Shown in pieces: positions 4,362 through 32,662 of a stretch of 64,000 bases of DNA (its first letter is position 1; each line of letters opens with the position of its first letter). Origin of the DNA: Orbicella franksi (taxonomy: Eukaryota); contig OZ116712.1 in NCBI GenBank assembly GCA_964199315.1, positions 19,220,001-19,284,000 on the forward strand, written 5' to 3'. Position numbers and translations under genes: made by a program. The notes below the pieces were generated by a model. The model searched no databases. It was not told where the DNA came from and saw only the letters and a list, made by a program, of their open reading frames with translations.

Positions 4362-6605
4362 ATGGATATCAAAACGTTGCTCCATAATCTCCGTGAAGAA
4401 GTGTCTTGCTCGGTGTGTTCCGACATATTTACCGATCCAAAACACCTGCCATGTTTACACAGTTTCTGTCTGCACTGCTTGAAACAATGGCATAGGACGA
4501 GTCATGGCTGCGACACCATCAGATGCCCGAATTGTCAAGCCGTTAGCAGAGTACCTGAAAGTGGGGATCTGAAAGATCTTCCAAGCAGTTTTTATCTGAA
4601 TGGCTTGATTGATGTGCTGGCAATCAAAGAGTGCAGAAATAGTCAAGTAAGATGTGGGAACTGCGAGAAGAAAAGCTCTGCCACTTCTTATTGTTTCCGG
4701 TGTTGCATATTTCACTGTCAAGAGTGCGTAACTGCACACAACATAATGCGAAGCAATAAAGATCATCGTGTTCTGGCGCTGAAAGACTTTGAAGACAAGG
4801 ACTATGAGGATGTGCTAAAGCGACCTGTGTTCTGTACAAAGCAACGGAACGAGAAAGAAGAGCTAAAGTACTTTTGTAAGTGTGAAATGGCGGTCTGCCA
4901 AACTTGTGTCACTCTAAGCCACAGTGGTCATGCTTTGGAGCACATAGAAGACGAAACTGAAAGACAAAAGATTGAAATGAAATCAATGATTGAAACACAG
5001 AAGCGTAATTTACAAGCAAAGCTGACTGCTGTTAGTAAACTTGATGAAGACTACGCGAAGATCATACAACGAGGCGAAGAGGTGAAGAGGGACGTTCAGA
5101 GGACTGTTGACAATTTAATTGTCAATATTGAAGCGAAGAAACAGACTATTTTTGCAGCGGTGGAAGACCAAACAAAGAAATCACTGGAAAGTCTAACAAC
5201 CCAGAAGACCGAGATCGAGAATCAAATAGAGGTGATCAAATCAACGTTGGATAAAGCTGATAAAGTTTTGACACGAAGTGCAAACGCTGAAGTCGTTCAA
5301 GTGAAAAAGTCATTACAAACAATCTTGGAGGGAGTTGATCAAACTACTAAGCCAACTGAGCGTGACCTGAAAGATCCTCCGACGTTGGTTTTCGTGCCAA
5401 ATCTAAAGATGTTGAAGACTGTAAGCACCGAAGAAATTGGAACACTGAAAATAGTGCAGCAAACTGAAGCTAGTCAATCTGTCGCTGAGGGCAAAGGACT
5501 CCAAGAAGGAACTGTTGGAGTTGAAGCACAGTTTGTTCTGACCACTAGAAACGCAGAGGGAGAGCAGTGTTACAATAAACATGACCGTGTAACGGTAGAG
5601 ATGAGGGACGAACAAGGACGAGAATGCGCGACGGAAGTGCGAATAAATGACAATAAAGATGGAAGCTACAAAATCAGCTATTCACCCAAAGATCAAGGCA
5701 AATACAAAGTGACAGTAAAGGTAAACGGAGGACACGTTCTTGATAGTCCTTTTTCCATTGATGTGAAATTATTTCAGTTAAAACCTGCTTTTTCTTTTGG
5801 AAAAGAAGGTTCGTCTGTCGGAATGTTTAAGTATCCCTTTGGGGTGGCAGTGAATGCCAGGGACGAGATAGCTGTAACTGATTGTGGGAACTACAGAGTT
5901 CAAATCTTCAAGAGTGATGGAAAATACTTAAGATCGTTTGGTCGGGAAGGTAACAAAGTGGGCGAATTTAAGTATCCTTTGGGAATAACGTTTCATACAA
6001 ATGGAAATATTTTCGTAGCAGACAGGGATAACCATAGTATCCAGATTTTCAGTGGGGAGGGTGAGTACGTGGGTATGTTTGGTGGGAAAGGAATCCTTGA
6101 TAGTCAGCTCTCTTATCCTTGGGGTTTATCTGTAGACAGTAATGGAAACATCATTGTTGCTGATGTAGGTAACATCATGATTAAGATCTTTTCTCCTGAA
6201 GGCAAGTTTCTAACAAAGATAGGTGGGCAGGGCTCTTTTACTTGTCCTATCCACTGTGTTCAGTGTGATAGATATCTCATAGTGTCAGACTACAGTAAAC
6301 ACTGTATAAAGGTTTTTAATTGTAATGGAGACTTTCAGTACAAGTTTGGAAAACAGGGTAGCGGGGACGGGGAGTTTAATTATCCCCATTGTTTGTCAGT
6401 GACCAAGTCAGGACACCTGATGGTCTGTGATTCAGGTAATAATAGAATACAAGTATTTGAACTCAGTGGAAAGTTTGTTGGCAAGTTTGGAAGAAAGAGT
6501 AGTAATTTAGGAGAATTCAATTTCCCATCGTCTGTAGCAGTTCTCAGTAATGGCCGAATTGTTGTGTCTGACAAGAATAACCATCGCATCCAGATACTGG
6601 AGTGA
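4362..6605 (+). CDS. TRIM-NHL protein (TRIM2/3/71-like E3 ligase), copy 1, intronless, 747 aa
   Basis: C3HC4 RING (CSVC...PCLHSFCLHC...CPNC), B-box1, degenerate B-box2, coiled coil, filamin repeat (DNKDGSYKISYSP), six NHL repeats (FxxPxGVAV...DxxNHRIQ). Start set at the ATG (MDIK) shared by all copies, not the TTG at 4314. Confidence 0.93.
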   Translation: MDIKTLLHNLREEVSCSVCSDIFTDPKHLPCLHSFCLHCLKQWHRTSHGCDTIRCPNCQAVSRVPESGDLKDLPSSFYLNGLIDVLAIKECRNSQVRCGNCEKKSSATSYCFRCCIFHCQECVTAHNIMRSNKDHRVLALKDFEDKDYEDVLKRPVFCTKQRNEKEELKYFCKCEMAVCQTCVTLSHSGHALEHIEDETERQKIEMKSMIETQKRNLQAKLTAVSKLDEDYAKIIQRGEEVKRDVQRTVDNLIVNIEAKKQTIFAAVEDQTKKSLESLTTQKTEIENQIEVIKSTLDKADKVLTRSANAEVVQVKKSLQTILEGVDQTTKPTERDLKDPPTLVFVPNLKMLKTVSTEEIGTLKIVQQTEASQSVAEGKGLQEGTVGVEAQFVLTTRNAEGEQCYNKHDRVTVEMRDEQGRECATEVRINDNKDGSYKISYSPKDQGKYKVTVKVNGGHVLDSPFSIDVKLFQLKPAFSFGKEGSSVGMFKYPFGVAVNARDEIAVTDCGNYRVQIFKSDGKYLRSFGREGNKVGEFKYPLGITFHTNGNIFVADRDNHSIQIFSGEGEYVGMFGGKGILDSQLSYPWGLSVDSNGNIIVADVGNIMIKIFSPEGKFLTKIGGQGSFTCPIHCVQCDRYLIVSDYSKHCIKVFNCNGDFQYKFGKQGSGDGEFNYPHCLSVTKSGHLMVCDSGNNRIQVFELSGKFVGKFGRKSSNLGEFNFPSSVAVLSNGRIVVSDKNNHRIQILE

Positions 6606-9600
6606 GCACTGTACTTTATGAAAAAAGAGAAACTCTAGGACATTAATTCAAAATTCAAAATTTATTTTAGTTTTCAGTTTGTTTAATATGTGGAATTATT
6701 TTCTGTGATAAAACGTTAGAGATGCAGTGTTCACCCAATTGCTTGTGGTGTGGCTCTGTATCGGTTGAACTGTTCTATAATTGTTTTGGGGTTAGGTGGG
6801 ACGGGTGGGTGGGTGACAAAAACAAATTTGTGTGGCTTGCAGTTGGATGGGAATAATACGTACATCTCTTAAGTTGTATTGTATGAATTATTTTGAAGGA
6901 CAAGAAAAAACGTTTTTTTTTTGTTTACTTTACCAGTGGTTATATTATATAATAGAGTGACTAGCAAAATAAGAAAGTTATAAAACCACTTTATGGATTA
7001 ATTGTTGTAATAAGAACCTCCACTATAGGAGAAAAGGCTGTTTAGGGGATTTGCCTTTTCTTAATTTAAAGAAGAAACATTTTGTTTCTCAAATTATTAC
7101 TATACTCTTTGACATTTAATTGTCGTTATGATGTTTTTATAGCAAGTTTGTTTTAGGGATTAGCAGGTTATTGACAGTCAGGTATATACTGGAAAATATG
7201 TAGTACAAAGAACATTGCTTCAATGAATTTATCAAGTTACTAATTGCCTTGACGTTTGTATTTTCCTTATACTCAATAGCAGACGGTATTTGTTAGCTGC
7301 AGTGCTACAGTTAAACCCCACTTTACGAATGACCGCTTAATACGGACACCTTGAGCCTTAGTTCCTAGCTCCAAGATTTTCTGTTAGCTTGACCAGCTTA
7401 AGACAGACACCTGGATTATAGCAACACTTAGTGTACTTCTGACGGTGTTTGAGAAAACGGGGTTCGACTGTATCTGTAGGTTAAAATATATGTTTTTAAA
7501 GTGTGTATTTTTAGCTTTAGTTTATTGGAACTTTAAAGTTAACTGCTTTAATGATGAAACGTTTTGTAGAAAGAGCTGTTTGCAATGATTAAGAGCAGTA
7601 AATAGCTTGATATGAAATAATTGTAAAATCATCATTTTCTTTGATAATGTAAATAAACAAAGTGTGAGTTCAAGAAAGTTGCTCTTTGCTTTGAGTTTAC
7701 TTTTTAGTTTCTTGTGTGAAAAAAGAAATTGCTAGAGATCGTAAAGAGAGGTTCATAAATTCTCCAGTACAATGGGCCGAATAAGCCTGTTTAATAAGGT
7801 TTTATCGTATTTAACTCTGTTCTTTTGTGACTACGTTATAAATTGAAAAAACTTGAGTTTGTTTTGGAGCTATGAAAACGAAATACATGATAAGTTACGA
7901 GGTCATTTGATACATGACTACGTTTCAGCTTCCTGTTAACACGAACCGTGGTCGAACAATAACTTTACCTCTTTGACTGTGTTGAGATACAGAAGAAACA
8001 CTTCAAAGCAGTTACGTTAACCTTCCCCTCCCTACAAATCTCTTGCACGCTACTCTTGGCGGGTCGGCAAGGCGAGCGAGCACTAGTTTCATATTCTGCA
8101 GGGTTTCTTTTTTTCTGGTAGCGCTAAATTCATTGCGTGGAGAACTGGACTCGAGAAAGGAAATCAATGGCAATAGGTTAGATAAACTAGCGCCGTTCTT
8201 AAAGCGTTTTATGTTTCTTTCTCCGTACCTCGGTTGTGTGCTCCGCCAAGGTTTGTTTTTGGAAGCAATGCTACAATGCCTTTCGTTGTCACGATACTGT
8301 CCCACAGGAAGTTAACGCCGAAGAGCCATTTAGGGAAAGGCTAGATACAACAAGCAAGCACCGAGGAAGCGTATGATACTTGTCCAAACGAAAGAGCAAT
8401 CTGACGGATTTTTCAGTAGAAGCCAACTTAAAACCAAATATTGAAAAAAGAACCCCTGGGAGTCACGCTTCAGTTTAAGTTTGTAGTTTCTAGAGCAAAG
8501 AAATATATTTTTAAGTTTTCTTTCTTGCCACGAACAATCAATGAATAGAACTCTCTTCCTGAGGATATTGTCCCGGAATGCATTGTCCGTAGATAGTTTT
8601 AAATCAAAGTGAGTTTTTAATATTCGAATGTATTAGTTTTATTTGGATTTTTTTAATTTTTTGGATATTTTATTATATTATTTTTATTTAGAGAGTTTTA
8701 TTTTTATTTTTTTTTATTTTTTTAATATCCCAGTGTATTATTTTTATTTAGATTTTTAAAGCTGGTGTGATATCTCAAGCATTTTACCAAATTAACTAAG
8801 TAGAGATATAGATGTAAAGTGCGTTCCTCAGCTTTCGGCTTCTCTGTCTTCTCTTCAGTGTTTCAATCAGAATGTATACAAGTAAACATTTCCCTTGTTT
8901 TACCGCCAAAGAATAGAATCGCTTGAACAGTGACGTATGACGGCGCTAGTGTCCCTGCTCTAGTATGGTATTGTTGGGACGCCCCTAAGTTGTGTGTATG
9001 ATATACAGCGCGCTCGTTTGTAAAGCCTTGGAATGAAGGATTATTAAAGCTGACCGGATCGTTTGACTGCTTGGGAGTTTTTCGCGAAATAAGTTTACTT
9101 TCTCACTAAATATCCTGGGAAAGTATTTGTCTTCTCCTCATAGCCACAAGACTGAAAAAAAAGGGTTGAACGTATCTAGATAATTGCTAGAAGGAGGAAA
9201 TGAGAAACACTCCATTGAAATCATTTAATTTGTTTTTTTCTCAATCTTTAACTGAAAAGTTCTTTACTGTTGATGAGTTGACCGATACACAAGATCCTTG
9301 TCAGACCAAAAAACGCTTTTCATTCCTCCAATAGAATAACTACACGTCACATGTATATAACCATGAGGCACTGACGGTTACCGAGCCCCGAGTTAGGGGG
9401 GAGGGGTAGAGGGGAGGCCCATACGAAAAGGTCGGGGATGCTCGTCGGAAAATTTAAATTAAAGTCCAAGAGGAGATCAATCTGGGTGAAACTCTAACTT
9501 TATTGTCAGTCCCTACAAGATACCACTTAAAACGAAAGTGACAGCGTTGACGTCTTGAGGGTCTTCAAGTGCACACTTAGAAAGCTAAAAATAGCTCACT

Positions 9601-9976
9601 ATTTCAGTGAGGTCAGCTGTTACAAACCACAACAGCTCTTAATTCAAACTTGCCACTGATTTTCAACGTCCAAAGAAAACGATTGATATCAAATTTCTCC
9701 TGACTGAGCCGCAGTATTTCTTTAAATATTTTTGAGAGAATTTGGGTTTTGGTCAAACCTTTTGAACTGTGATGATTGGGTCTAGTATTTCCATAACGTG
9801 TCTTCTTACATTAAGGAGAAATTAGGCTTTTATCACAGGCGCAGATGAAACGGAAAGATTTTAGAAGATGGATAAGATGCCATTGCCACATAAAAATTAC
9901 AGTCCATAGTGACATAAGTACTTTTGATCATAACAGACTGCCAAGAAGCATTTTTCCTGTCGTGAAACATCGACGC

Positions 9977-11870
9977 CTTATGCCCAACCCTCCTCTTTTA
10001 CCCGGGCTTGGGATCGGCTGGATGTACCCAGATTAGACTGGATATACCCAGGCACAGTCAAAAAAAAAAAATTACCAAACTAGACAAGAGAAAACTTGTA
10101 GAGAGACTCGCGGTTGAGGCAGAAGAGGCTGCTGGTAGACAAGATCTGAAGACCCTATATAGAATTAACAAAATGTTAAATAATGGTTTTAAAAACAACG
10201 ATGTCCCTGTAAAAGACACAGATGGTAATGTTTTTTCGAAAGAAGCAGAAAAGCTGGCATGCTGGAAGGAACATTTTGAAAGCATTCTAAATAGGCCAGA
10301 ACCTGAACAGGTAGCTGAGATTCCACCGGCAGTAGAGGACTTGGATATCTGCATAGATCCACCTACCATGGAAGAGGTGAAAGCTGCCATCAAAGTGATG
10401 AAGAGCGGGAAGGCAGGTGGAGCAGATGGAGTGACTGCAGAAATGCTCAAGGTTGAAGAAACTGAAACACCAGGCCTTTTGACGTGCATATTCAGAGAGA
10501 TATGGGAGAGCGAGACGATTCCTGAAGCGTGGAAGACCGTACTCTTTGTCAAATTACCCAAAAAGGGTGATTTGGGTGACTGCAACAACTGGAGAGGTGT
10601 CACTCTACTCCCCATTACCAGCAAGGTCTTCAGCAAGATCATCCATACAAGACTGGCTGAAACACTGGATGAGTACATCAGGCAGGAACAGGCAGGTTTC
10701 CGCCCTGGACGCTCGTGCTCTGACCACATTTTCACCCTAAGGCAAATTCTAGAGCAGAGGAAAGAATGGAATGCTCCCCTGTATGCCAACTTTATTGACT
10801 TTGAGAAGGCGTTTGACGGCATTTACCGAGATTCCCTATGGAAGATATTAAGGCACTACGGGATTCCATCAAAGCTGGTAAATGTCATCAACATGCTTTG
10901 CAGTGACTTCAAGTCCCAGGTTATTTGCAACGCAGCGCTTACAGACGCCTTCAGCGTGACCACGGGTGTGAAAAAAGGGTGTATTTTCTCCCCCTTTCTA
11001 TTATTCTTGGGGATCGACTGGGTTTTGAAACAAGTGACTAGTGGTGGAAGGAGAGGGATTAGATGGACATTGACCAGTGTCTTGGAATACCTTGATTATG
11101 CAGATGATATTGCGCTGCTCGCCCATCGACACCAGGACATGGAGGCAAAGACCAATGCAACTACAGCAGGGAAATTAGGCCTGAAGATCACCATTAAGAA
11201 GACAAGGCATTTGAGGATGAGTGGCAGGACCAATGAATCCATCATGGTGTATGGGGAAGTGGTAGAAGAGGTTGATCACTTTACCTACCTGGGATCTAAG
11301 GTGTCCACCAGCGGAGATGGAGAAGAAGAGATCCTAGTCCGGATTTCAAAGGCAAGCCAGGCCTTTGCCTCGCTTCGAGGCACTTGGAGATCCAAGAACA
11401 TCAGCCAGAACACAAAGATCCGATTTTTCAAAAGCAATGTCTTAAGCATTCTACTTTATGGCGCAGAATCCTGGAAGATGACCAAAACCATCAGCCACAA
11501 GCTAGAAGTCTTCCAGAACAAGAGCCTTCGCACGATTCTCCGTATATACTGGCCCCAGACAATCTCAAACTGTGAGTTGCGCAGAAGAACAGGAACAGAA
11601 CCAATCAAACAACAAGTCCGGCGAAAGAGATTGAAATGGATTGGTCATGTGCTGCGCATGCCACCACCAGCACTACCACGAGTTGCCCTCAGGTGGACCC
11701 CTGATGGCCGTAGAAAGAGAGACAGACCGAAAGAAACATGGGGGAGGACAGTGGAGAAAGAGATGAAGGAGAACAGCTGGACATGGGGTCACCTGGAACG
11801 ACGAGCACCCGACAGAGGCCAATGGCGCACTTTGGCCGAGGCCTTATGTGTTTCAAAACACGAAGAGGAT

Positions 11871-11904
<34 letters not shown>

Positions 11905-11905
11905 G
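9977..11905 (+). mobile_element. RTE-clade non-LTR retrotransposon lacking the endonuclease, copy 1
   Basis: Open RT frame 10008-11873 (LPKKGDL...WRGVTLL, QAGFRPGRS, FIDFEKAFD, YADD); (TAAG)8 tail; 13-bp TSD GAAA(C/G)ATCGACGC at 9964-9976 and 11906-11918. Confidence 0.92.
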
Positions 11906-12354
11906 GAAAGATCGACGCGTGGCGCGCGAACTAGCTCACGAGGGACGCGCGACTCGCAGATAGTCCATAGAGATTGTAAGTTCAGTTCCTCCTGACCAAC
12001 GCACCCCAACAAAATGAGCTGTCCATCTTTTGCAAGTGAGAAAAACAAATGACGTCTATTCAGACAGGAAGGAATTGAAATACAGACTCCAAAGTACTAA
12101 TGTTTTGTTCTGATCAATGTTTTAATGACATCTGATCAACCAGCCACATGTGTCACATTCTTAGGAATCAGTATCAGGCAAAATGACAAAGGCTCTTAAA
12201 ACAACGTTCCATGATTGGTTTGAACAAGGGAAAAGATTATCATAATAAACAGCCACGATTTCAAGAAGAACTAAAAAAGAAAGTCACCAGACTTCATTGT
12301 TTCGAGCTGAGTTCCGCGAAAACCTTGCTTTACCCCCTTGTTTGTGAACACGAC

Positions 12355-14469
12355 ATGGATATCAAAACGTTGCTCCATAATCTCCGTGAAGAAGTGTCTT
12401 GCTCGGTGTGTTCCGACATATTTACAGATCCAAAACATCTGCCATGCTTACACAGTTTCTGTCTGCACTGCTTGAAACAACGGCATAGGACAAGTCATGG
12501 CTGCGACACCATTAGATGTTTAAATTGTCAAGCCCTTAGCAGAGTACCTGAAAGTGGCGATCTGAAAGATCTTCCAACCAGCTTTTATCTGAATGGCTTG
12601 ATTGATGTGCTGGCAATAAAAGAGTGCAGAAGTAGTCAAGTAAGATGTGGGAACTGCGAGAAGAAAAGCTCCGAAACTTTTTATTGTTTCCATTGCTGCA
12701 TATTTCACTGTCAAGAGTGCGTCACGGCACACAACATCATGCGAAGCAATAAAGATCACCGTGTTCTGGCGCTGAAAGACTTTCAAGACAAGGACTATGA
12801 GGATGTGCTAAAGCGACCTGTGTTCTGTGCAAAGCAACGGCACGAGAAAGAAGAGCTGAAGTACTTTTGTAAGAACTGTGAAACGGCCGTTTGCCAAACT
12901 TGTGTTTTGATGGATCATCCTGGTCATGCTTTGGAGCACATAGATGACGAAGCTGAAAGAGAAAAGATTGAAATCAAATCAATGATTGAAACACAGAAGC
13001 ATAATTTACAAGCAAAGCTGATTGCTGTTAGTAAACTTGATGAAGACTACGCGAAGATCATACAAAGAGGCGAAGGGGTGAAGAGGGACGTTCAAAGGAC
13101 TGTTGACAATTTAATTGCCAATATTGAAGCGAAGAAGCAAACTATTTTTGCAGCGGTGGAAGACCAAACAGAGAAATCACTCGAAAGTCTAACAACGCAA
13201 AAGACCGAGATCAAAAATCAAATAGAGGTGATCAAATCAATGTTGGATAAAGCTGATAAAGTTTTGACACGATGTGCAAACGCTGAAGTCGTTCAAGTGA
13301 AAAAGTCATTACAAACAATCTTGGAGGGAGTTGATCAAACTACTAAGCCAACTGAGCGTGACCTGAAAGATCTTCCGATTTTAGTTTTCGTGCCAAATCT
13401 AAAGATGTTGAAGACTGTCAAGACCGAAGAAATTGGAACACTGAAAATACTGCAGCAAACTGAAGCTAGGGACGAAGAAGGACGAGAATGCGCGACGGAG
13501 GTGGGAATAAATGACAATAAGGATGGAAGCTACAAAATCTCCTATTCACCGAAAGATCAAGGCAAATACAAAGTGACAGTAAAGGTAAACGGCAAACACG
13601 TTCTTGATAGTCCTTTTTCTATTGAGGTGAAATCATTTCAGTTAAGACCTGCTTTTTCTTTTGGAAAACGAGGTTCGTCTGTTGGAATGGTTAATTATCC
13701 CTGGGGGGTGGCAGTGAATGCCAGGGACGAGATAGCTGTAACTAATTGGGGGAACCACAGAGTTCAAATCTTCAAGAGTGATGGAAAATACTTAAGATCT
13801 TTTGGTCGGGAAGGTAACAAAGCGGGCGAATTTAAGTATCCAGCGGGAATAACTTTTCATACAAATGGAAATATTTTCGTAGCAGAGCAGGATAACCATA
13901 GGATCCAGATTTTCATTGGGGAGGGTAAGTACGCGGGTATGTTTGGTGGGAAAGGAAGCCGTGATAGTCAGTTCTCTAATCCTTGTGGTTTATCTGTAGA
14001 CAGTGATGGAAATATCATTGTTGCTGATACAGGTAACAAATTAACTAAGATCTTTTCTCCTGATGGCAAGTTTCTAATGAAGGTAGGTGGGCACGGCTCT
14101 TTTACTTTTCCTTTCCACTGTGTTTAGTGTGATAGATATCTCATAGTGTCAGACTACAGTACAGATTGTATGAAAGTTTACGACAGGAATGGAAACTTTC
14201 AGTACAAGTTTGGAAAGCAGGGTGGAGGGGACGGGGAGTTTAAGTATCCCTGTTGTTTTTCAGTGAACAAGTCAGGAGACCTGATGGTCTGTGATTTAGG
14301 TAATGATAGAATACAAGTTTTTGAACTGAATGGAAATTTTGTTAGCAAGTGTGGAAGAAAGGGCAGTAATTTAGGAGAATTCAATTTCCCATCGTGTTTA
14401 GCAGTTCTCAGTAATGGCCGGATTGTTGTGTCTGACAAGAATAACCATCGCATCCAGATACTGGAGTGA
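12355..14469 (+). pseudogene. TRIM-NHL copy 2, disrupted
   Basis: In-frame TAG at 14125-14127 (CAG in the paralogs) with the frame continuing to ILE* at 14469; 132-nt in-frame deletion in the filamin repeat at 13469/13470; RING Trp changed to Arg (TGG>CGG, 12481). Confidence 0.85.
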
Positions 14470-17183: not shown

Positions 17184-17924
17184 TAACAAGATGCATGTTC
17201 ATTGATGAACGGGTCCCTTATCAATGAGCATAACATGAGCCTTGGTTTAATTTCTCCCGTTCTTCTGTTCAGTGGCCTTTCCGAGATGGAAAAGTGTATC
17301 GTTATAAGAATTGCAGACAAACAGCTTACTACTAGTAAGCTATAATTAACAGGCCACACGACAAGACACAGAAAGTATATTTGACGGCTAGTGGCTAAAA
17401 ATAGTGAGGTTTTTGTTTTGAACACCGTAAGCGAGACCAGAAGCATGGATTTACACCCCTTTGCGAGACGACAAGCATCCATCCCACGCAGATAGGGAGC
17501 TAAACTCCAGATTAAACAGTCCTGGAATAAGCAGTGGGCAGTGACTGTGTGGACAATTGATGGGAAAGCTCCCCCTCTGACATTTTAATGTTGTAGTGCC
17601 TCTCGTCACACAGAAGTGTACCACCATGCACCAAACTGTTGGGACAAACTAAGAAACCTGTGTTGGACTAGCAGCCCATCCGGGGGAGGCAGCAATTCCC
17701 TTGACTGCTTTATACCACGCAATTCAGGATAAGTTCTGCTGGGCACGCTTCGACCGAACGGACTGAATATTAACTTCAATTTCTTGTGACTGTGGGTCTA
17801 GCGCGTATTACACTTACGCGCACTAAAACAATGGTTTTCCCCTTTGTTTACTTTGTACTTCATGCGCGCGCTTTTCGTGCGTGCTTACGCGTACAGTTTT
17901 TTTGTATGGCGTGGCTAAATCCAC

Positions 17925-22000: not shown

Positions 22001-22328
22001 GCTGTCCATCGTTTGTGCGTGAAAACAACAAATGAAGTCTATTCAGACAGAAAGGAATTGAACTACAGACACCAAAGCACTAATGTTTTGTTCTGCTCAA
22101 TGTTTTAGTGACATCTGATCAAGGAGCCCCAAGGGTCACATTCTTTGGAATTAGTATGCGAGACAAAATGACAAGGGCTCTTAAAGCGACGTTCCATGAT
22201 TGGTTTGAACAAGGGAAAAGATTAGCATAATAAACAATCACGATTCCAAGAAGAGCTAAAAAAAGAAAGTAACAAGACTTCATGGTTTCGAGTTGAGTTC
22301 CGCGAAAACCTTTGTTTCTGAACACGAC

Positions 22329-24575
22329 ATGGATATGAAAACGTTGCTCCATAATCTCCGTGAAGAAGTGTCTTGCTCGGTGTGTTCCGACATATTTACC
22401 GATCCAAAACATCTGCCATGCTTACACAGTTTCTGTCTGCATTGCTTGAAACAATGGCATAGGACGAGCAATGGCCGCGACACCATCAGATGCCCAAATT
22501 GTCAAGCCGTTAGCAGAGTACCTGAAAGTGGCGATCTGAAAGATCTTCCAACCAGTTTTTATCTGAATGGCTTGATTGATGTAGTGGCAATCAAAGAGTG
22601 CAGAAGTAGTCAAGTAAGATGTGGAAACTGCGAGAAGAAAAGCTCCGAGACTTCTTACTGTTTCCAGTGTTGCATATTTTATTGTGAGGAGTGTGTAACA
22701 GGCCACAACATCATGCGAAACAATAAAGATCACCGTGTTCTGGCGCTGAAAGACTTTCAAGACAAGGACTATGAGGATGTGCTCAAGCGACCTGTGTTCT
22801 GTGCAAAGCAACGGCACGAGAACGAAGAGCTGAAGTTCTTTTGTAAGAACTGTGAAATGACCGTTTGCCAATTTTGTGTTTTGATGGATCATCCTGGTCA
22901 TGCTTTGGAGCACATAGAAGACGAAGCTGAAAGACAAAAGATTGAAATGAAATCAATGATTGAAACACAGAAGCGTAATTTACAAGCAAAGCTGATTGCT
23001 GTTAGTAAACTGAATGAAGACTACGCGAAGATTATACAACGAGGCGAAGAGGTGAAGAGAGACGTTCAGAGGACTGTTGACAATTTAATTGCTAATATTG
23101 AAGCGAAGAAGCAAACTATTTTTGCAGCGGTGGAGGACCAAACAGAGAAATCACTGGAAAGTCTAACAACGCAAAAGACCGACATCGAGCATCAAATAGA
23201 GGTGATCAAATCAACGTTGGATAAAGCTGATAAAGTTTTGACACGAAGTGCAAACGCTGAAGTCGTTCAAGTGAAAAAGTCATTACAAACAATATTGGAA
23301 GGAGTTGATCAAACTACTAAGCCAACTGAGCGTGACCTGAAAGATCTTCCGACGTTGGATTTCGTGCCAAATCAAAAGATGTTGAAAACTGTCAACACCG
23401 AAGAAATCGGAACACTGAAAACACTGCAGCAAACTGAAGCTAGTCAATCTGTCGCTGTGGGCAAAGGACTCGAAGAAGGAACTGTTGGAGTTGACGCACA
23501 GTTTGTTCTGACCACTAAAAACACAGAGGGAGAGCAGTGTTACAATAAACATGACCGTGTATCGGTAGAGATCAGGGACGAACAAGGACGAGAATGCGCG
23601 ACGGAAGTGCGAATAAATGACAATAAGGATGGAAGCTACAAAATCAGCTATTCACCCAAAGATCAAGGCAAATACAAAGTGACAGTAAAGGTAAACGGCG
23701 AACACATTCTTGATAGTCCTTTTTCTATTGATGTGAAATTATTTCAGTTAAGACCTGTTTTATCTTTTGGAAAAGAAGGTTCGTCTGTTGGAATGTTTAT
23801 GAATCCCTGGAGGGTGGCAGTGAATGCCAGGGACGAGATAGCTGTAACTGATTTTGGGAACCACAGAGTTCAAATCTTCAAGAGTGATGGAAAATACTTA
23901 AGATCGTTTGGTCGGGAAGGTAACAAAGCGGGCGAATTTAAGTATCCTTTGGGAATAACGTTTCATACAAATGGAAATATTTTCGTAGCAGACGACGGTA
24001 ACCATAGGATCCAGATTTTCAGTGGGGAGGGTGAGTACGTGGGTATGTTTGATGGGCAAGGAAGCCTTGATAGTCAGCTCTCTTATCCTTGGGGTTTATC
24101 TGTAGACAGTGATGGAAACATCATTGTTGCTGATAAAGGTAACAACATGATTAAGATCTTTTCTCCTGATGGCAAGTTTCTAATGAAGATAGGTGGGCAG
24201 GGTTCTTTTAGTTCTCCTATCCACTGTGTTCAGTGTGATAGATATCTCATAGTGTCAGACTACTGTGAACACTGTATAAAGGTTTTTAATTGTAATGGAG
24301 ACTTTCAGTACAAGTTTGGAAAGGAGGGTAGCGGGGACGGGGAGTTTAAGTATCCCCGTTGTTTGTCAGTAAACAAGTCAGGACACCTGATAGTCTGTGA
24401 TTCAGGTAATAATAGAATACAAGTATTTGAACTCAGTGGAAAGTTTGTTGGCAAGTTTGGAACAAAGGGCAGTAATTTAGGAGAATTCATTTGTCCAGTG
24501 TCTGTAGCAGTTCTCAGTAATGGCCGAATTGTTGTGTCTGACAAGAATAACCATCGCATCCAGATACTGGAGTGA
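22329..24575 (+). CDS. TRIM-NHL copy 3, intronless, 748 aa
   Basis: Uninterrupted ORF; RING, both B-boxes, filamin and six NHL repeats intact. Confidence 0.93.
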   Translation: MDMKTLLHNLREEVSCSVCSDIFTDPKHLPCLHSFCLHCLKQWHRTSNGRDTIRCPNCQAVSRVPESGDLKDLPTSFYLNGLIDVVAIKECRSSQVRCGNCEKKSSETSYCFQCCIFYCEECVTGHNIMRNNKDHRVLALKDFQDKDYEDVLKRPVFCAKQRHENEELKFFCKNCEMTVCQFCVLMDHPGHALEHIEDEAERQKIEMKSMIETQKRNLQAKLIAVSKLNEDYAKIIQRGEEVKRDVQRTVDNLIANIEAKKQTIFAAVEDQTEKSLESLTTQKTDIEHQIEVIKSTLDKADKVLTRSANAEVVQVKKSLQTILEGVDQTTKPTERDLKDLPTLDFVPNQKMLKTVNTEEIGTLKTLQQTEASQSVAVGKGLEEGTVGVDAQFVLTTKNTEGEQCYNKHDRVSVEIRDEQGRECATEVRINDNKDGSYKISYSPKDQGKYKVTVKVNGEHILDSPFSIDVKLFQLRPVLSFGKEGSSVGMFMNPWRVAVNARDEIAVTDFGNHRVQIFKSDGKYLRSFGREGNKAGEFKYPLGITFHTNGNIFVADDGNHRIQIFSGEGEYVGMFDGQGSLDSQLSYPWGLSVDSDGNIIVADKGNNMIKIFSPDGKFLMKIGGQGSFSSPIHCVQCDRYLIVSDYCEHCIKVFNCNGDFQYKFGKEGSGDGEFKYPRCLSVNKSGHLIVCDSGNNRIQVFELSGKFVGKFGTKGSNLGEFICPVSVAVLSNGRIVVSDKNNHRIQILE

Positions 24576-27500
24576 GCACTGTACTTTATGAAAAAAAAGA
24601 GAAACTCTAGGACATTAATTCAAAATTCAAAATTCAAAATTTATTTTAGTTTGCAGTTTTTTTAATATGTGGAATTATTTTCTGTGGTAAAACGTTAGAG
24701 ATGCAGTGTTCACCCAATTGCTTGTGGTGTGGCTCTGTATCGGTTGAACTGTTCTATAATTGTTTTGGGGTTAGGTGGGACGGGTGGGTGGGTGACAAAA
24801 ACAAATTTGTGTGTCTTGCAGTTGGATGGGAATAATACGTACATCTCTTAAGTTGTATTGTATGAATTAGTTTGAAGGACAAGAAAAAACGTTTTTTTTT
24901 TTTTGTTTACTTTACCAGTGGTTATATTATATAATAGAGTGACTAGCAAAATAAGAAAGTTATAAAACCACTTTATGGATTAATTGTTGTAATAAGAACC
25001 TCCACTATAGGGGAAAAGGCTGTTTAGGGGATTTGCCTTTTCTTAATTTAAAGAAGAAACATTTTGTTTCTCAAATTATTACTATACTCTTTGACATTTA
25101 ATTGTCTTTATGATGTTTTTATAGCAAGTTTGTTTTAGGGAATAGCAGGTTATTGACAGTCAGGTATGTACTGGAAAATATGTAGTACAAAGAACATTGC
25201 TTCAATGAACTTACCAAGTGACTAATTGCCTTGACGTTTGTATTTTCCTTATATTCAATAGCAGACGGTATTTGTTAGCTGCAGTGCTACAGTTAAACCC
25301 CACTTAACGAATGACCGCTTAATACGGACACCTTGAGCCTTATGGAATTTGATTTTAGTTCCTAGCTCCAAGATTTTCTGTTAGCTTGACCAGCTTAAGA
25401 CAGACACCTGGATTATAGCAACACTTAGTGTGCTTTTGACGGTGTTTGAGAAAACGGGGTTCGACTGTATCTGTAGGTTAAAATATATGTTTTTAAAGTG
25501 TGTATTTTTAGCTTTAGTTTATTGGAACTTTAAAGTTAACTGCTTTAATGATGAAACGTTTTGTAGAAAGAGCTGTTTGCGATGATTAAGAGCAGTAAAT
25601 AGCTTGATATGAAATAATTGTAAAATCATCTTTTTCTTTGAAAATGTAAATAAACAAAGTGTGAGTTCAAGAAAGTTGCTCTTTGCTTTGAGTTTACTTT
25701 TTAGTTTCTTATGTGAAAAAAGAAATTGCTAGAGATCGTAAAGAGAGGTTCATAAATTCTCCAGTACAATGGGCCGAATAAGCCTGTTTAATAAGGTTTT
25801 ATCGTATTTAACTCTGTTCTTTTGTGACTGCGTTATAAATTGAAAAACCTTGATTTTGTTTTGGAGCTATGAAAACGAAATACATGATAAGTTACGTGGT
25901 CATTTGATACATGACTACGTTTCAGCTTCCTGTTAACACGAACCGTGGTCGAACAATAACTTTACCTCTTTGACTGTGTTGAGATACAGAAGAAACACTT
26001 CAAAGCAGTTACGTTAACCTTCCCCTCCCTACAAATCTCTTGCACGCTACTCTTGGCGGGTCGGCAAGGCGAGCGAGCACTAGTTTCATATTCTGCAGGG
26101 TTTCTTTTTTTCTGGTAGCGCTAAATTCATTGCGTGGAGAACTGGACTCGCGAAAGGAAATCAATGGCAATAGGTTAGATAAACTGGCGCCGTTCTTAAA
26201 GCGTTTTATGTTTCTTTCTCTGTACCTCGGTATTGTGCTCCGCCAAGGTTTGTTTTTGGAAGCAATGCTACAATGGTTTTCGTTGTCACGATACTGTCCC
26301 ACAGGAAGTTAACGCCGAAGAGCCATTTAGGGAAAGGCTAGATACAACAAGCAAGCACCGAGGAAGCGTATGATACTTGTCCAAACGAAAGAGCAATCTG
26401 ACGGATTTTTCAGTAGAAGCCAAATTAAAACCAAATAATGAAAGAAGAACCCCTGGGAGTCACGCTTCAGTTTAAGTTTGTAGTTTCTAGAGCAAAGAAA
26501 GATATTTTTAAGTTTTCTTTCTTGCCACGAACAATCAATGAATAGAACTCTCTTCCTGAGGATATTGTCCCGGAATGCATTGTCCGTAGATAGTTTTAAA
26601 TCAAAGTGAGTTTTTAATATTCGAATGTATTAGTTTTATTTGGATTTTTTTAATTTTTTAGATATTTTATTATATTATTTTTATTTAGATTTTTTTATTT
26701 TTATTTATTTTTATTTTTTTAATATCCCAGTGTATTATTTTTATTTAGATTTTTAAAGCTGGTGTGATATCTCAAGCATTTTACCAAATTAACTAAGTAG
26801 AGATGTAGATGTAAAGTGCGTTCCTCAGCTTTCGGCTTCTCTGTCTTCTCTTCAGTGTTTCAATCAGAATGCATACAAGTAAACATTTCCCTTGTTTTCC
26901 CGCCAAAGAATAGAATCGCTTGAACAGTGACGTATGACGGCGCTAGTGTCCCTGCTCTAGTATGGTATTGTTGGGACGCCCCTAAGTTGTGTGTATGATA
27001 TACAGCGCGCTCGTTTGTAAAGCCTTGGAATGAAGGATTATTAAAGCTGACCGGATCGTTTGACTGCTTGGGAGTTTTTCGCGAAATAAGTTTACTTTCT
27101 CGCTAAATATCCTGGGAAAGTATTTGTCTTCTCCTCAGAGCCACAAGACTGAAAAAAAAAAAGGGTTGAACGTATCTAGATAATTGCTAGAAGGAGGAAA
27201 TGAGAAACACTCCATTGAAATCATTTAATTTGTTTCTTTCTCAATCTTTAACTGAAAAGTTCTTTACTGTTGATTAGTTGACCGATACACAAGATCCTTG
27301 TCAGACCAAAAAACGCTTTTCATTCCTCCAATAGAATAACTACACGTCACATGTATATAACCATGAGGCACTGACGGTTACCGAGCCCCGAGTTAGGGGG
27401 GAGGGGTAGAGGGGAGGCCCATACGAAAAGGTCGGGGATGCTCGTCGGAAAATTTAAATTAAAGTCCAAGAGGAGATCAATCTGGGTGAAACTCTAACTT

Positions 27501-27990
27501 TATTGTCAGTCCCTACAAGATACCACTTAAAACGAAAATGACAGCATTGACGTCTTGAGGGTCTTCAAGTGCACACTTAGAAAGCTAAAAATAGCTCACT
27601 ATTTCAGTGAGGTCAGCTGTTACAAACCACAACAGCTCTTAATTCAAACTTGCCACTGATTTTCACCGTCCAAAGAAAACGATTGATATCAAATTTCTCC
27701 TGACTGAGCCGCAGTATTTCTTTAAATAATTTTGAGAGAATTTGGGTTTTGGTCAAACCTTTTGAACTGTGATGATTGGGTCTAGTATTTCCATAACGTG
27801 TCTTCTTACATTTACCATAAAATGGTAAGGAGAAATTAGGCTTTTATCACAGGCGCAGATGAAACGGAAAGATTTTAGAAGATGGATAAGATGCCTTTGC
27901 CATATAAAAATTACAGTCCATAGTGACATAAGTACTTTTGATCATAACAGACTGCCAAGAAGCATTTTTCCTGTCGTGAAACATCGACAC

Positions 27991-29896
27991 CCCATGCCCA
28001 ACCCTCCTCTTTTACCCGGGCTTGGGATCGGCTGGATGTACCCAGATTAGACTGGATATACCCAGGCAAAGTCAAAAAACAAAAAATTACCAAACTAGAC
28101 AAGAGAAAACTTGTAGAGAGACTCGCGGTTGAGGCAGAAGAGGCTGCTGGTAGGCAAGATCTAAAGACCCTATATAGAATTAACAAAATGTTAAATAATG
28201 GTTTTAAAAACAACGATGTCCCTGTAAGATGGTAATGTTCTTTCGAAAGAAGCAGAAAAGCTGGCATGCTGGAGGGAACATTTTGAAAGCATTCTAAATA
28301 GGCCAGAACCTGAACAGGTAGCTGAGATTCCACCGGCAGTAGAGGACTTGGATATCTGCATAGATCCACCTACCATGGAAGAGGTGAAAGCTGTCATCAA
28401 AGTGATGAAGAGCGGGAAGGCAGGTGGAGCAGATGGAGTGACTGCAGAAATGCTCAAGGTTGAAGAAACTGAAACACCAGGCCTTTTGACGTGCATATTC
28501 AGAGAGATATGGGAGAGCGAGACGATTCCTGAAGCGTGGAAGACCGGACTCTTTGTCAAATTACCCAAAAAGGGTGATTTGGGTGACTGCAACAACTGAA
28601 GAGGCATCACTCTGCTCCCCATTACCAGCAAGGTCTTCAGCAAGATCATCCATACAAGACTGGCTGAAACACTGGATGAGTACATCAGGCAGGAACAGGC
28701 AGGTTTCCGCCCTGGACGCTCGTGCTCTGACCACATTTTCACCCTAAGGCAAATTCTAGAGCAGAGGAAAGAATGGAATGCTCCCCTGTATGCCAACTTT
28801 ATTTACTTTGAAGAGGCGTTTGACGGCATTTACCGAGATTCCCTATGGAAGATATTAAGGCACTACGGGATTCTATCAAAGCTGGTAAATGTCATCAAGA
28901 TGCTTTGCAGTGACTTCAAGTCCCAGGTTATTTGCAACGCAGCGCTTACAGACGCCTTCAGCGTGACCACGGGTGTGAAACAAGGGTGTATTTTCTCCCC
29001 CTTTCTATTATTCTTGGGGATCGACTGGGTTTTGAAACAAGTGACTAGTGGTCGAAGGAGAAGGATTAGATGGACATTGACCTTGATTATGCAGAAAAAC
29101 CTTAAAAGACCTTGATTATGCAGATGATATTGCGTTGCTCGCCCATCGACACCAGGACATGGAGGCAAAGACCAATGCCTCGGCAACTAAAGCAGGGAAA
29201 TTAGGCCTGAAGATCAACATTAAGAAGACAAGGCATTTGAGGATGAGTGGCAGGACCAATGAATCCATCATGGTGAATGGGGAAGTGGTAGAAGAGGTTG
29301 ATCACTTTACCTACCTGGGATCTAAGGTGTCCACCAGCGGAGATGGAGAAGAAGAGATCCTAGTCCGGATTTCAAAGGCAAGCCAGGCCTTTGCCTCGCT
29401 TCGAGGCACTTGGAGATCCAAGAACATCAGCCAGAACACAAAGATCCGATTTTTCAAAAGCAATGTCTTAAGCATTCTACTGCATGGCGCAGAATCCTGG
29501 AAGATGACCAAAACCATCAGCCACAAGCTAGAAGTCTTCCAGAACAAGAGCCTTCGTACGATTCTCCGTATATACTTGCCCCAGACAATCTCAAACTATG
29601 AGTTGCGCAGAAGAACAGGAACAGAACCAATCAAACAACAAGTCCGGCGAAAGAGATTGAAATGGATTGGTCATGTGCTGCGCATGCCACCAGCAGCATT
29701 ACCACGAGTTGCCCTTAGGTGGACTCCTGATGGCCGTAGAAAGAGAGACAGACCGAAAGAAACATGGGGGAGGACAGTGGAGAAAGAGATGAAGGAGAAC
29801 AGCTGGACATGGGGTCACCTGGAACGACGAGCACCCGACAGAAGACAATGGCGTACTTTGGCCGAGGCCTTATGTGTTTCAAAACACGAAGAGGAT

Positions 29897-29960
<64 letters not shown>
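27991..29960 (+). mobile_element. RTE retrotransposon, copy 2 (decayed)
   Basis: Near-identical to copy 1; 8-nt deletion near 28227, TGG>TGA at 28597-28599, complex indel at 29080-29125, (TAAG)16 tail. Confidence 0.92.
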
Positions 29961-30421
29961 ATCGACGCGTGGCGCGCGAACTAGCTCACGAGGGACGCGC
30001 GACTCGCAGATAATCGTGAGTCTTCGCGAGTCCGTAGAGATTGTAAGTTCAGTTCCTCCTGACCAACGCACCCCAACAAAATGAGCTGTCCATCTTTTGC
30101 GCGTGAGAAAAACAAAGGACATCTATTCAGACAGGAAGGAATTGAAATACAAACTCCAAAGCACTAATGTTTTGTTCTGATCAATGTTTTAGTGACATCT
30201 GATCAACCAGCCACATGTGTCACATTCTTAGGAATCAGTATCAGGCAAAATGACAAAGGCTCTTAAAACAACGTTCCATGATTGGTTTGAACAAGGGAAA
30301 AGATTGTCATAATAAACAGCCACGATTCCAAGAAGACCTAAAAAAGAAAGTCACAAGAAGTCATTGTTTCGAGTTGAGTTCCGCGAAAACCTTGCTTTAC
30401 CCGCTTGTTTCTGGACACGAC

Positions 30422-32662
30422 ATGGATATCAAAACGTTGCTCCATAATCTCCGTGAAGAAGTGTCTTGCTCGGTGTGTTCCGACATATTTACCGATCCAA
30501 AACATCTGCCATGCTTACACAGTTTCTGTCTGCACTGCTTGAAACAATGGCATAGGACGAGTCATTGCTGCGACACCATTAGATGCCCAAATTGTCGAGC
30601 CGTTAGCAGAGTACCTGAAAGTGGGGATCTGAAAGATCTTCCAACCAGTTTTTATCTGAATGGCTTGATTGATGTGCTGGTAATCAAAGAGTACAGGAGT
30701 AGCCAAGTAAGATGTGGGAACTGCAAGAAGAAAAGCTTCGAGACTTCATACTGTTTCCAGTGTTGCATATTTCACTGTCAAGAGTGCGTCACTGCACACA
30801 ACATCATGCGAAGCAATAAAGATCACCGTGTTCTGGCGCTGAAAGACTTTCAAGACAAGGACTATGAGGATGTGCTCAAGCGACCTGTGTTCTGTGCAAA
30901 GCAACGGCACGAGAAAGAAGAGCTAAAGTACTTTTGTAAGAACTGTGGAACGGCGGTTTGCCAATCTTGTGTTTTGATGGATCATCCTGGTCATGCTTTG
31001 GAGCACATAGAAGACGAAGCTGAAAGACGCAAGATTGAAATGAAATCAATGATTGAAACACAGAAGCGTAATTTACAAGCAAAGATAGACGCTGTTAGTA
31101 AACTTGACGAAGACTGCGTGAAGATCATACAACGAGGCGAAGAGTTGAAGAGGGACGTTCAGAGGACTGTTGACAATTTAATTGCCAATATTGAAGCGAA
31201 GAAGCAAACTATTTTTGCAGCGGTGGAAGACCAAACAAAGAAATCGCTTGAAAGTCTAACAACCCAAAAGATCGAGAACCAAATAGAGGTGATCAAATCA
31301 TCGTTGGATAAAGCTGATAAAGTTTTGACACGAAGTACAAACGCTGAAGTCGTTCAAGTGAAAAAATCATTAGAAACAATCTTGGAGGGAGTTGATCAAA
31401 CTACTAAGCCAAATGCGCGTGACCCAAAAGGTCTTCCGATATTGGTTTTCGTGAAAAATCAAAGGATGTTGAAGATTGTCAACACCGAAGAAATTGGAAC
31501 ACTGGGAATACTGAACGAAACTAACGCAAGTCAGTCTGTAGCTGAGGGCAAGGGCATTCAAGAAGGAACTGTTGGAGTTGAAGCACAGTTTGTTCTTACC
31601 ACAAAAAACGCAGAGGGAGGACAGTGTTACAGTAAACATGATCGTGTAACGGTAGAGATCAGGGACGAAGAAGGACGAGAATGTGCGATGGAAGTGCGAA
31701 TAAATGACAATAAGGATGGAAACTACAAAATCAGCTATTCACCCAAAGATCAAGGCAAATACAAAGTGACAGTAAAGGTAAACGGCGAACACATTCTTGA
31801 TAGTCCTTTTTCTATTGAGGTGAAATTATTTCAGTTAAGAGCTGCTTTTTCTTTTGGGAAACAAGGTTCGTCTGTTGGAATGTTTAACAATCCCTGGGGG
31901 GTGGCAGTGAATGCCAGGGACGAGATAGCTGTAACTGATTGTGAGAACCACAGAGTTCAAGTCTTTAATAGCGAAGGAAAATGTTTAAGATCTTTTGGTC
32001 GGGAAGGTAAGAATCTGGGCGAATTTAAGTTTCCTAGGGGAATAACTTTTCATAAAAATGGAAATATTTTCGTAGCAGACAACGGTAACCATAGGATCCA
32101 GATTTTCAGTGGCGAGGGTGAGTACGTGGATATGTTTGGTGGGAAGGGAATCCTTGATAGTCAGCTTTCTAATCCTTGGGGTTTATCTGTAGACAGTGAT
32201 GGAAATATCATTGTTGCTGATACAGGTAACAAACTGATTAAGATCTTTTCTCCTAATGGTAAGTTTTCAATGAAAATTGGTGGGCAGGGTTCTTTTTCTG
32301 ATCCTATCCACTGTGTTCAGTGTGATAGATATCTCATTGTGTCAGACAACGGAGCAAATTGCGTAAAGGTTTTCAACTGTAATGGCAACTTTCAGTACAA
32401 GTTTGGAAAGCAGGGTGGAGGGGATGGGAAGTTTAAGTATCCCCGTTGTTTGTCAGTAAACAAGTCAGGACACCTGTTGGTCTGTGATTCAGATAATAAT
32501 AGAATACAAGTATTTCAACTAAATGGAAAGTTTGTTGGCAAGTTTGGAACAAAGGGCAGTAATTTAGGAGAATTAAATTTCCCATCGTCTGTAGCAGTTC
32601 TAAGTAATGGCCGGATTGCTGTGTCTGAATGGCATAACAATCGCATTCAGATACTTGAGTGA
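30422..32662 (+). CDS. TRIM-NHL copy 4, intronless, 746 aa (possible 48-aa extension from ATG 30278)
   Basis: Uninterrupted ORF with the same architecture; 6-nt deletion in the coiled coil (TQK--IENQ). Confidence 0.92.
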   Translation: MDIKTLLHNLREEVSCSVCSDIFTDPKHLPCLHSFCLHCLKQWHRTSHCCDTIRCPNCRAVSRVPESGDLKDLPTSFYLNGLIDVLVIKEYRSSQVRCGNCKKKSFETSYCFQCCIFHCQECVTAHNIMRSNKDHRVLALKDFQDKDYEDVLKRPVFCAKQRHEKEELKYFCKNCGTAVCQSCVLMDHPGHALEHIEDEAERRKIEMKSMIETQKRNLQAKIDAVSKLDEDCVKIIQRGEELKRDVQRTVDNLIANIEAKKQTIFAAVEDQTKKSLESLTTQKIENQIEVIKSSLDKADKVLTRSTNAEVVQVKKSLETILEGVDQTTKPNARDPKGLPILVFVKNQRMLKIVNTEEIGTLGILNETNASQSVAEGKGIQEGTVGVEAQFVLTTKNAEGGQCYSKHDRVTVEIRDEEGRECAMEVRINDNKDGNYKISYSPKDQGKYKVTVKVNGEHILDSPFSIEVKLFQLRAAFSFGKQGSSVGMFNNPWGVAVNARDEIAVTDCENHRVQVFNSEGKCLRSFGREGKNLGEFKFPRGITFHKNGNIFVADNGNHRIQIFSGEGEYVDMFGGKGILDSQLSNPWGLSVDSDGNIIVADTGNKLIKIFSPNGKFSMKIGGQGSFSDPIHCVQCDRYLIVSDNGANCVKVFNCNGNFQYKFGKQGGGDGKFKYPRCLSVNKSGHLLVCDSDNNRIQVFQLNGKFVGKFGTKGSNLGELNFPSSVAVLSNGRIAVSEWHNNRIQILE

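Follow-up and report, generated by a model that had tools for sequence, protein, structure and literature searches.

Diversified NHL propeller face in a tandem array of TRIM-NHL genes of the coral Orbicella franksi

The TRIM-NHL genes and their array

A stretch of 64,000 nucleotides from the coral Orbicella franksi (GenBank assembly GCA_964199315.1, 497 Mb; contig OZ116712.1, here C15, C15:19,220,001-19,284,000), called the window throughout, was analysed for the TRIM-NHL genes that it carries. Four long, intronless open reading frames (ORFs), c1 to c4, lie on the + strand within 26.8 kb (Table 1). In these genes and their paralogs, strong diversifying selection acts on approximately 25-30 codons, which occupy five recurrent positions in each blade of the NHL propeller, and the remaining scaffold and propeller framework are under purifying selection (omega, the ratio dN/dS, 0.36-0.44). 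We consider it probable that the array is a germline-encoded recognition repertoire of cytosolic E3 ligases with a diversified ligand face.

Table 1. Features of the window (positions count from the first letter of the window)
Feature	Position	Strand	Remarks
Segmental duplication, first copy (c1, spacer, LINE, 5' part of c2)	4296-13452	+	9.3 kb
c1, intact TRIM-NHL gene	4314-6605	+	ORF of 763 aa; conserved initiator Met (MDIKTLL) at 4362
c1 NHL six-blade propeller	5793-6602	+	30 hypervariable codons spanning 5829-6578
LINE-type reverse-transcriptase ORF between c1 and c2	10008-11873	+	RVT_1 and DUF6451 (Pfam)
c2, probable pseudogene	12211-14466	+	ORF 12211-14127; TAG at 14125-14127
c2 NHL region, interrupted by TAG	13657-14466	+	
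Segmental duplication, second copy (c3, spacer, LINE, 5' part of c4)	22275-31513	+	95% identical to first copy
c3, intact TRIM-NHL gene	22293-24575	+	Conserved Met at 22329; poly(A) RNA coverage
c3 NHL propeller	23763-24572	+	Hypervariable codons 23799-24548; modelled with AlphaFold2
c3 3' untranslated region, ~1.1 kb	24576-25674	+	RNA contig with terminal poly(A) run at ~25674
Degraded second LINE copy between c3 and c4	28191-29899	+	
c4, intact TRIM-NHL gene	30278-32662	+	ORF of 794 aa from upstream ATG; conserved Met at 30422
c4 NHL propeller	31850-32659	+	

The four genes are only the downstream end of a far larger array. A six-frame search of the genome with the c3 propeller gave at least 144 NHL matches, approximately 32 of which lie head to tail in C15:18.905-19.253 Mb (~350 kb) with c4 as the last member, and approximately 50 copies are at least 72% identical to c3. 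Sister clusters are located at 17.8 Mb, at 19.9 Mb and on unplaced contigs, while a separate NHL cluster at 4.41-4.49 Mb of C15 belongs to a different subfamily with ~37% NHL identity to c3. The propeller of the preceding array member ends at window base 8, and its tail, which resembles a 3' untranslated region (3'UTR), covers positions 1-1108 of the window with 93-95% identity to the tails of c1 and c3. On the other side the array stops abruptly at c4, and no ORF of at least 115 codons was found downstream of it (33000-64000). For the evolutionary analysis, 31 distinct intact paralog coding sequences out of 45 loci were used, with 738 ungapped codons.

Pfam matches to RING, B-box, Filamin and NHL repeats were obtained in all four window copies. 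The N-terminal RING matched zf-RING_UBOX and zf-C3HC4, the E-values were 1e-45 to 1e-49 for NHL and 1e-22 to 1e-24 for the Filamin domains of c1, c3 and c4, and the Filamin domain of c2 is truncated. The B-box match was above the curated cut-off in c2, c3 and c4 and below it in c1. A putative coiled coil at approximately residues 200-370 was judged from its position and strong conservation. SPRY gave no Pfam match in the window copies, the C-terminal domain of which is NHL. By architecture and fold, c1-c4 are class VII TRIM (TRIM-NHL) proteins, and E3 ligase activity is predicted for them. The metal ligands of the RING (C-x2-C...C-x-H-x2-C-x2-C...C-x2-C) are invariant in the 31 paralogs, which argues for a retained effector module. 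Neither a signal peptide nor a membrane span is visible on direct reading of the protein sequences, and a cytosolic location is therefore expected.

Hypervariable positions and selection

The preliminary description of this DNA had noticed that the amino acid differences between the four NHL domains concentrate at two sites of each blade. A rule was fixed before testing that comprised, per blade, the positions P-2, P-1 and P+1 of F-x-x-P-x and D+1 and D+2 of D-x-x-N, altogether 30 rule positions (six blades x five positions). Between the four window copies, variation was present at 26 of these 30 and at 61 of the remaining 240 NHL positions (odds ratio 19, Fisher p=8e-11), which confirms the concentration. 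The individual strings were also found as reported, both around F-x-x-P-x (KYPF/NYPW/MNPW/NNPW, KYPL/KYPA/KYPL/KFPR, TCPI/TFPF/SSPI/SDPI, NYPH/KYPC/KYPR/KYPR and NFPS/NFPS/ICPV/NFPS) and at D-x-x-N (CG/WG/FG/CE, RD/QD/DG/NG, VG/TG/KG/TG and KN/KN/KN/WH); the c2 strings of blades 5 and 6 lie past the stop codon of c2. The two codon comparisons between c1 and c3 are exact as well, with AAG TAT CCC TTT GGG at 5829 in c1 against ATG AAT CCC TGG AGG at 23799 in c3, and AAT TTC CCA TCG at 6519 against ATT TGT CCA GTG at 24489. The same pattern extends to 119 database homologues from other corals, in which rule positions make up 26 of the 30 columns with the highest variability across the entire protein and the mean entropy is 2.71 bits at the rule positions versus 0.55 bits in the rest of the NHL.

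Selection was analysed using our own code for Goldman-Yang site models, and the codon likelihood of IQ-TREE was matched to 0.001 log units. The log likelihoods (lnL) were -15621.7 for M1a and -15398.8 for M2a, with an omega of 5.3 for the selected class and 4.4% of codons in it. For M7, M8a and M8 they were -15647.6, -15607.7 and -15395.1, respectively, and M8 placed 4.9% of codons in a selected class with an omega of 4.7. The corresponding likelihood ratio tests (LRTs) gave 446 for M1a/M2a, 505 for M7/M8 and 425 for M8a/M8, with a whole-gene omega of 0.49. Posteriors above 0.95 were obtained for 29 codons, 25 of them in the propeller, four in the RING/B-box region and none in the coiled coil or the filamin domain. 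Selected were 21 of the 30 rule positions versus four of the 238 other propeller codons and four of the 470 N-terminal codons (Fisher p=2e-20). Of the four propeller sites outside the rule, three (in blades 1, 2 and 5) correspond to the x of F-G-K-x-G, a rim position that is also periodic and belongs to the same loop.

When the rule positions were treated as a class, their omega was 2.6 in the 31 sequences (LRT against omega=1 29.9), compared to 0.44 for all other propeller codons and 0.36 for the N-terminal two thirds. Without the three intact window copies, the omega of the rule positions was 2.4 (LRT against omega=1 23.1, p=1.6e-6). With segment-specific trees the LRT was 247.6 for the propeller, 102.7 and 170.2 for its two halves, 12.7 with one site for the RING/B-box segment, and 0.0 for the coiled coil and filamin segment on its own tree. 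A tree-free test of 12 phylogenetically independent sister pairs gave a Nei-Gojobori ratio of the proportion of non-synonymous differences (pN) at rule positions to that of synonymous differences (pS) in the propeller of 2.9 (bootstrap 2.2-4.0), and the codon differences at rule positions were 117 non-synonymous versus eight synonymous. Between c1 and c3, pN at the rule positions is 0.27, against a divergence of 1.6-2.3% in the non-coding DNA of the same duplication. Positive selection at these sites, which the preliminary description had suggested, is therefore supported by the M7/M8 comparison, by an omega above 1 and by the tree-free ratio.

Hypermutation similar to that by diversity-generating retroelements or AID was considered and rejected. 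The selected sites have an unremarkable kappa (transition/transversion), and in four very young paralog pairs (pS <0.02) the rule sites are nearly unchanged, so there is no sign of targeted hypermutation.

Outside the propeller, the sites positive under a single tree are codons 50, 176, 184 and 188 in the RING loop and B-box 2, which in c3 correspond to ~22476 and 22857-22893. Codon 176 is the only one of the four to survive the segment-specific tree. The surfaces of B-box 2 mediate higher-order assembly in other TRIM proteins. At codon 50, Arg and Cys alternate (15/16 paralogs), which might reflect recurrent substitution at a hypermutable CpG.

To place the sites on a structure, the c3 propeller was modelled with AlphaFold2, yielding six blades of four strands each (24 strands) with a predicted local distance difference test score (pLDDT) of 94.6 and a predicted template modelling score (pTM) of 0.90. 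A Foldseek comparison of the model with Drosophila Thin, human and mouse TRIM71 and zebrafish LIN41 gave template modelling (TM) scores of ~0.9 at a root mean square deviation (rmsd) of 1.3-1.6 A; for Thin and TRIM71 the TM score was 0.90-0.92. In the model the selected residues close the D-A loop, directly ahead of strand A, or lie in the B-C loop, a short turn that follows strand B, and the topology of a propeller places both loops on one face.

This face can be compared with that of zebrafish LIN41, in which 14 residues of the 'upper' surface, opposite the filamin domain, touch an RNA stem-loop (Kumari et al. 2018, PMC5908797). They are Cys563, Arg564, Arg581, Ser582, Arg611, Lys628, Asp629, Tyr658, Trp660, Arg676, Arg707, Phe722, Arg752 and Arg770 (PMC5908797), and all 14 identities were recovered when residue numbers and chain indices were offset by 415. 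In a HMMER alignment of c3 with 6FPT_A, 14 of the 14 LIN41 RNA contacts fell on rule positions, and the filamin domain of c3 could also be aligned to that of LIN41. The hypervariable sites are therefore the canonical ligand-contact positions of NHL domains. The assignment of the variable loops to the ligand-binding face, made in the preliminary description, agrees with both the alignment and the modelled D-A and B-C loops.

Duplication, gene conversion and expression

The region 4296-13452 of the window is duplicated at 22275-31513, and the four genes are hence two copies of a two-gene unit. The array has grown by segmental duplication, and the paralogs are mosaics reshuffled through gene conversion, so that part of the diversity is reshuffled and not newly mutated. 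No third of the gene is compatible with the tree of another in approximately unbiased (AU) tests, where rejection was strong throughout (delta lnL 170-370); a single tree is consequently wrong for the gene. Divergence within the 9.3 kb duplication amounts to 5.6-6.9% for coding sequences versus 1.6-2.3% for the UTR, the spacer and the dead LINE (long interspersed nuclear element), i.e., a 3-4x higher divergence in coding DNA, which is best explained by gene conversion from other array members. Coding DNA that is more diverged than the non-coding DNA is the reverse of the usual pattern. Between c1 and c3, pS is 0.146 in the N-terminal half versus 0.036 in the propeller framework.

The 12 hypervariable clusters of the 31 paralogs comprise 194 distinct nucleotide cassettes, of which 110 are unique and 84 are shared, some of them between non-sisters. 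For example, the blade-6 cassette of c3, ATT TGT CCA GTG, is found elsewhere only in a copy 134 kb upstream, and the blade-6 cassette of c1 recurs in c4. As cassettes recur in other paralogs, the multi-nucleotide differences between c1 and c3 are not all changes that took place after the duplication. The preliminary description had stressed five changes beside identical sequence in each of the two codon comparisons; the changes are real, but they are partly cassettes imported as blocks.

In the poly(A) raw reads of one public run, the stretch 22200-25700 is covered continuously at an identity of at least 97% by 201 reads, 80 of them at 99% or more, and these reads showed neither splice joints nor coverage of the immediate flanks. 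At the end of the c3 3'UTR, an RNA contig of a different study terminates in a poly(A) run, and RNA contigs match the hypervariable part of c3 with zero mismatches. The c3 transcript is intronless, approximately 3.5 kb long and polyadenylated, with a 3'UTR of 1.1 kb. For c4, 54-61% of the propeller 31-mers are present in poly(A) RNA runs of several studies. The runs that hold the genes are labelled as coral or coral-metagenome samples. Expression of the copies, on which the preliminary description had made its interpretation depend, is thus seen as poly(A) RNA over c3, with the assignment of reads to c3 alone not certain because long identical stretches are common to the paralogs. RNA variant letters on c3 were seen at 23854, 23856, 23994-23998 and 24090, several of them on hypervariable codons (D+1/D+2 of blade 1, D+1/D+2 of blade 2 and P+1 of blade 3); these could be alleles or cross-mapped paralogs.

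Of the four genes, c2 is probably a pseudogene, which has a 44-codon in-frame deletion in the filamin domain in addition to the in-frame TAG, after which the frame is open as far as the usual ...HRIQILE stop, past 14466. The premature stop is in the Gln codon of V-Q-C-D-R-Y (locus coordinate 2001), and a stop at the identical codon is present in two further array members, at C15:18,943,044 and C15:18,917,354, both with additional breaks; the broken copy seems to have spread with the repeat unit or by gene conversion. The ORF of the LINE is intact in the first unit (621 aa) and broken in the second. The LINE is a duplicated passenger of the repeat unit.

On the unplaced contig C579, 3547 bases are 100% identical to positions 4556-8102 of the window. 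An alternative haplotype of c1 was considered for this contig and rejected, since complete identity points to an assembly duplicate, i.e., redundancy that holds no allelic information. Further identical locus pairs are L027/L028, L039/L040 and L044/L045.

Possible ligands and function of the array

The residue composition gives an idea of the possible ligands. Tyr accounts for 10.3% of residues at the hypervariable sites versus 1.9% in the framework, Trp for 5.4% versus 0% and Cys for 6.8% versus 2.5%, and Ser, Asn and Thr are likewise enriched at the 30 sites. Surfaces that recognise proteins typically have such a composition, rich in Tyr, Trp, Cys, Ser and Asn. The net charge of the 31 paralogs at the 14 contact-equivalent positions is approximately 0 (range -2 to +2) versus +8 in LIN41, the contacts of which include eight Arg, one Lys and one Asp. 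An uncharged face of this composition makes a protein or peptide a likelier ligand than an RNA backbone, and judging from the composition of the sites the ligand is probably a protein or peptide. The preliminary description had spoken of a ligand- or RNA-binding face. The contact positions are indeed shared with LIN41, but its basic RNA pocket has been lost, and RNA is therefore not the default ligand.

The paralogs could alternatively be RNA-binding regulators of the LIN-41/Brat type, in which selection diversifies RNA specificity for the repression of RNA from the cell, transposons or viruses. Hypervariability falls exactly on the positions that touch RNA in zebrafish LIN41, TRIM71 is among the closest solved relatives, and Brat reads bases via a mixed hydrophobic and basic surface (PMC5908797), so that aromatic residues are compatible with RNA. 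With the basic pocket gone and Drosophila Thin/TRIM32 as the closest solved relative, however, we regard this alternative as unlikely.

TRIM71/LIN-41 (PDB 6FPT/6FQ3, 7QRX, 8J72) shares the domain order of RING, B-boxes, coiled coil (putative in the coral proteins), filamin and six NHL blades, and the coral NHL is ~39% identical to it with a TM score of ~0.9 and an rmsd of 1.3 A. On the other hand, TRIM71/LIN-41 regulates development, evolves slowly as a single-copy gene and has a basic RNA pocket, whereas the coral genes form a multi-copy array with an uncharged, aromatic-rich hypervariable face. As they lack the basic pocket and are massively multi-copy, the coral genes are not orthologues of LIN-41/TRIM71. 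The best NHL match in sequence and structure is Drosophila Thin/Abba, the TRIM32 orthologue (PDB 6D69/6XG7; E 7e-64, TM 0.92). Thin/TRIM32 and TRIM2/TRIM3 differ from the coral genes in being conserved single genes with housekeeping roles in muscle or neurons. They bind proteins through the NHL, and we know of no tandem array of these genes and of no diversifying selection on them.

In the reading that we prefer, a diversified recognition repertoire, each paralog would be a cytosolic RING E3 ligase dimerised through its coiled coil, and the propeller face of each paralog would bind a different ligand. On binding, the array would mark its targets with ubiquitin or would signal. The likeliest targets would be the products of mobile elements or rapidly evolving non-self inside the cell, for example viruses, microbes or symbionts. 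By analogy with the systems described below, a role as immune sensors would be a reasonable inference. What is known of corals makes such a repertoire of interest. Corals must tell pathogens from their resident intracellular alga and a rich microbiome; to our knowledge, they lack adaptive immunity and their specific recognition molecules are largely unknown. The array matches the expectation for a recognition repertoire, with many copies, a constant effector and a compact set of selected contacts that is reshuffled between copies.

The closest parallels in the mode of evolution are primate TRIM5alpha/TRIM22 and teleost finTRIM/btr, with a constant RING/B-box/coiled coil, tandem expansion and selected loops in the recognition domain (PMC2657112, PMC3845644). 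The likeness lies only in the mode of evolution, namely a conserved E3 scaffold, multigene expansion and selection on loops. The vertebrate proteins carry the defining B30.2/SPRY domain and have proven antiviral roles, whereas the coral proteins lack SPRY, do not belong to this group and have a putative function. The preliminary description had drawn the analogy to the variable loops of the TRIM5 SPRY domain. With an omega above 1 at the sites, their placement on the contact face and poly(A) RNA over c3, the analogy with TRIM5/finTRIM is apt as a way of working, that is, as selection on the loops of a recognition domain. The leucine-rich repeats (LRRs) of plant nucleotide-binding LRR receptors (NLRs) and the variable lymphocyte receptors (VLRs) of lampreys are alike in having a repeated unit with few exposed hypervariable positions per repeat, diversified by duplication, gene conversion and selection. 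They are built on an LRR solenoid and not on a beta-propeller, and lamprey VLRs are somatically assembled, in contrast to the coral array with no sign of somatic assembly.

Several points weigh against the preferred reading. Only the evolutionary signature points to an immune or non-self role, and the open-access literature searched contained no report of an immune or antiviral function, or of induction by infection, of coral TRIM-NHL genes. The top-face assignment comes from the loop topology of a model and homology to LIN41, not from measured geometry, and the RNA reads are not assignable to one paralog with certainty. Recombination inflates the LRTs of site models, for which the five fixed segments and the tree-free test served as the only controls. 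The site models used fixed branch lengths with only their scale left free, and the posteriors are naive empirical Bayes values. Finally, synonymous divergence at the selected codons is 1.6-2.3x that of neighbouring codons. This may be due to the preservation of older lineages or to a local mutational contribution, and it fits old cassette lineages that were kept while the surrounding framework was homogenised.

Rapid gene turnover together with diversifying selection is also typical of conflict loci, and LINE elements lie inside the repeat unit. The array could thus serve in an intragenomic or reproductive conflict, such as transposon control, gamete recognition or meiotic drive, instead of pathogen defence, and expression here is not tied to immune challenge. 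The RNA runs, labelled coral or coral-metagenome, provide no evidence for germline-restricted expression, and we find this explanation improbable. Corals show allorecognition, and a hypervariable multigene array resembles histocompatibility loci. Still, determinants of colony self and non-self are a very improbable function of proteins with a cytosolic RING E3 architecture and no signal peptide or membrane span, which makes them poor candidates for the cell surface; moreover, the variation is between paralogs and not between individuals, and C579 as an assembly duplicate provides no allele. Likewise very unlikely, and largely refuted, is an artefact of relaxed constraint in decaying duplicates, mutation hot spots or gene-conversion false positives: strong recombination among the paralogs, the probable pseudogene c2 and the somewhat raised synonymous divergence speak for it, but omega is significantly above 1 and not merely near 1, the lower bound of the tree-free ratio is 2.2, selected sites recur at five equivalent structural positions in all six blades and match known contact residues, the 31 copies retain ORFs of ~750 codons with a framework omega of 0.36-0.44, kappa is ordinary and the very young pairs are almost unchanged at the selected sites.

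Taken as a recognition repertoire, the finding is a diversified set of TRIM proteins in a cnidarian built on the NHL propeller, a scaffold not known for such use. A full-text search that covered open-access papers and bioRxiv preprints revealed no account of diversifying selection on the NHL face, in corals or elsewhere, and a paper on pervasive tandem duplication in corals makes no mention of TRIM. An expansion of NHL-repeat and B-box orthogroups in merulinid corals is mentioned in a transcriptome paper (PMC11639872). As a more general and more tentative proposal, corals may possess an intracellular, germline-encoded recognition repertoire on the NHL propeller, with 30 contact positions that are selected and recombined and a constant effector, predicted to be an E3 ligase. 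If this is true, the NHL propeller joins the short list of evolved variable-receptor scaffolds, and should the repertoire detect viruses, microbes inside cells or the algal symbiont, it would be an independently arisen cnidarian counterpart of the TRIM5/finTRIM and NLR-type repertoires. The array also yields a testable set of 30 positions on a confidently modelled fold with dozens of natural variants. This set is usable for binding screens and for comparing copy number and alleles with disease resistance, bleaching and symbiont specificity.

Among named database proteins, the nearest are 'TRIM71-like' of Orbicella faveolata, at 83% identity, and proteins of Oculina patagonica, at ~80%, in agreement with a source in the robust clade of stony corals. 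In a library clustered at 50% identity, the best matches of the propeller were proteins of 1,000-7,700 residues with up to 41 NHL stretches. The propellers of these giant proteins were cut out singly for structure alignment and excluded from evolutionary inference. The giant multi-NHL proteins are either fused gene models of tandem arrays or real multi-propeller proteins.

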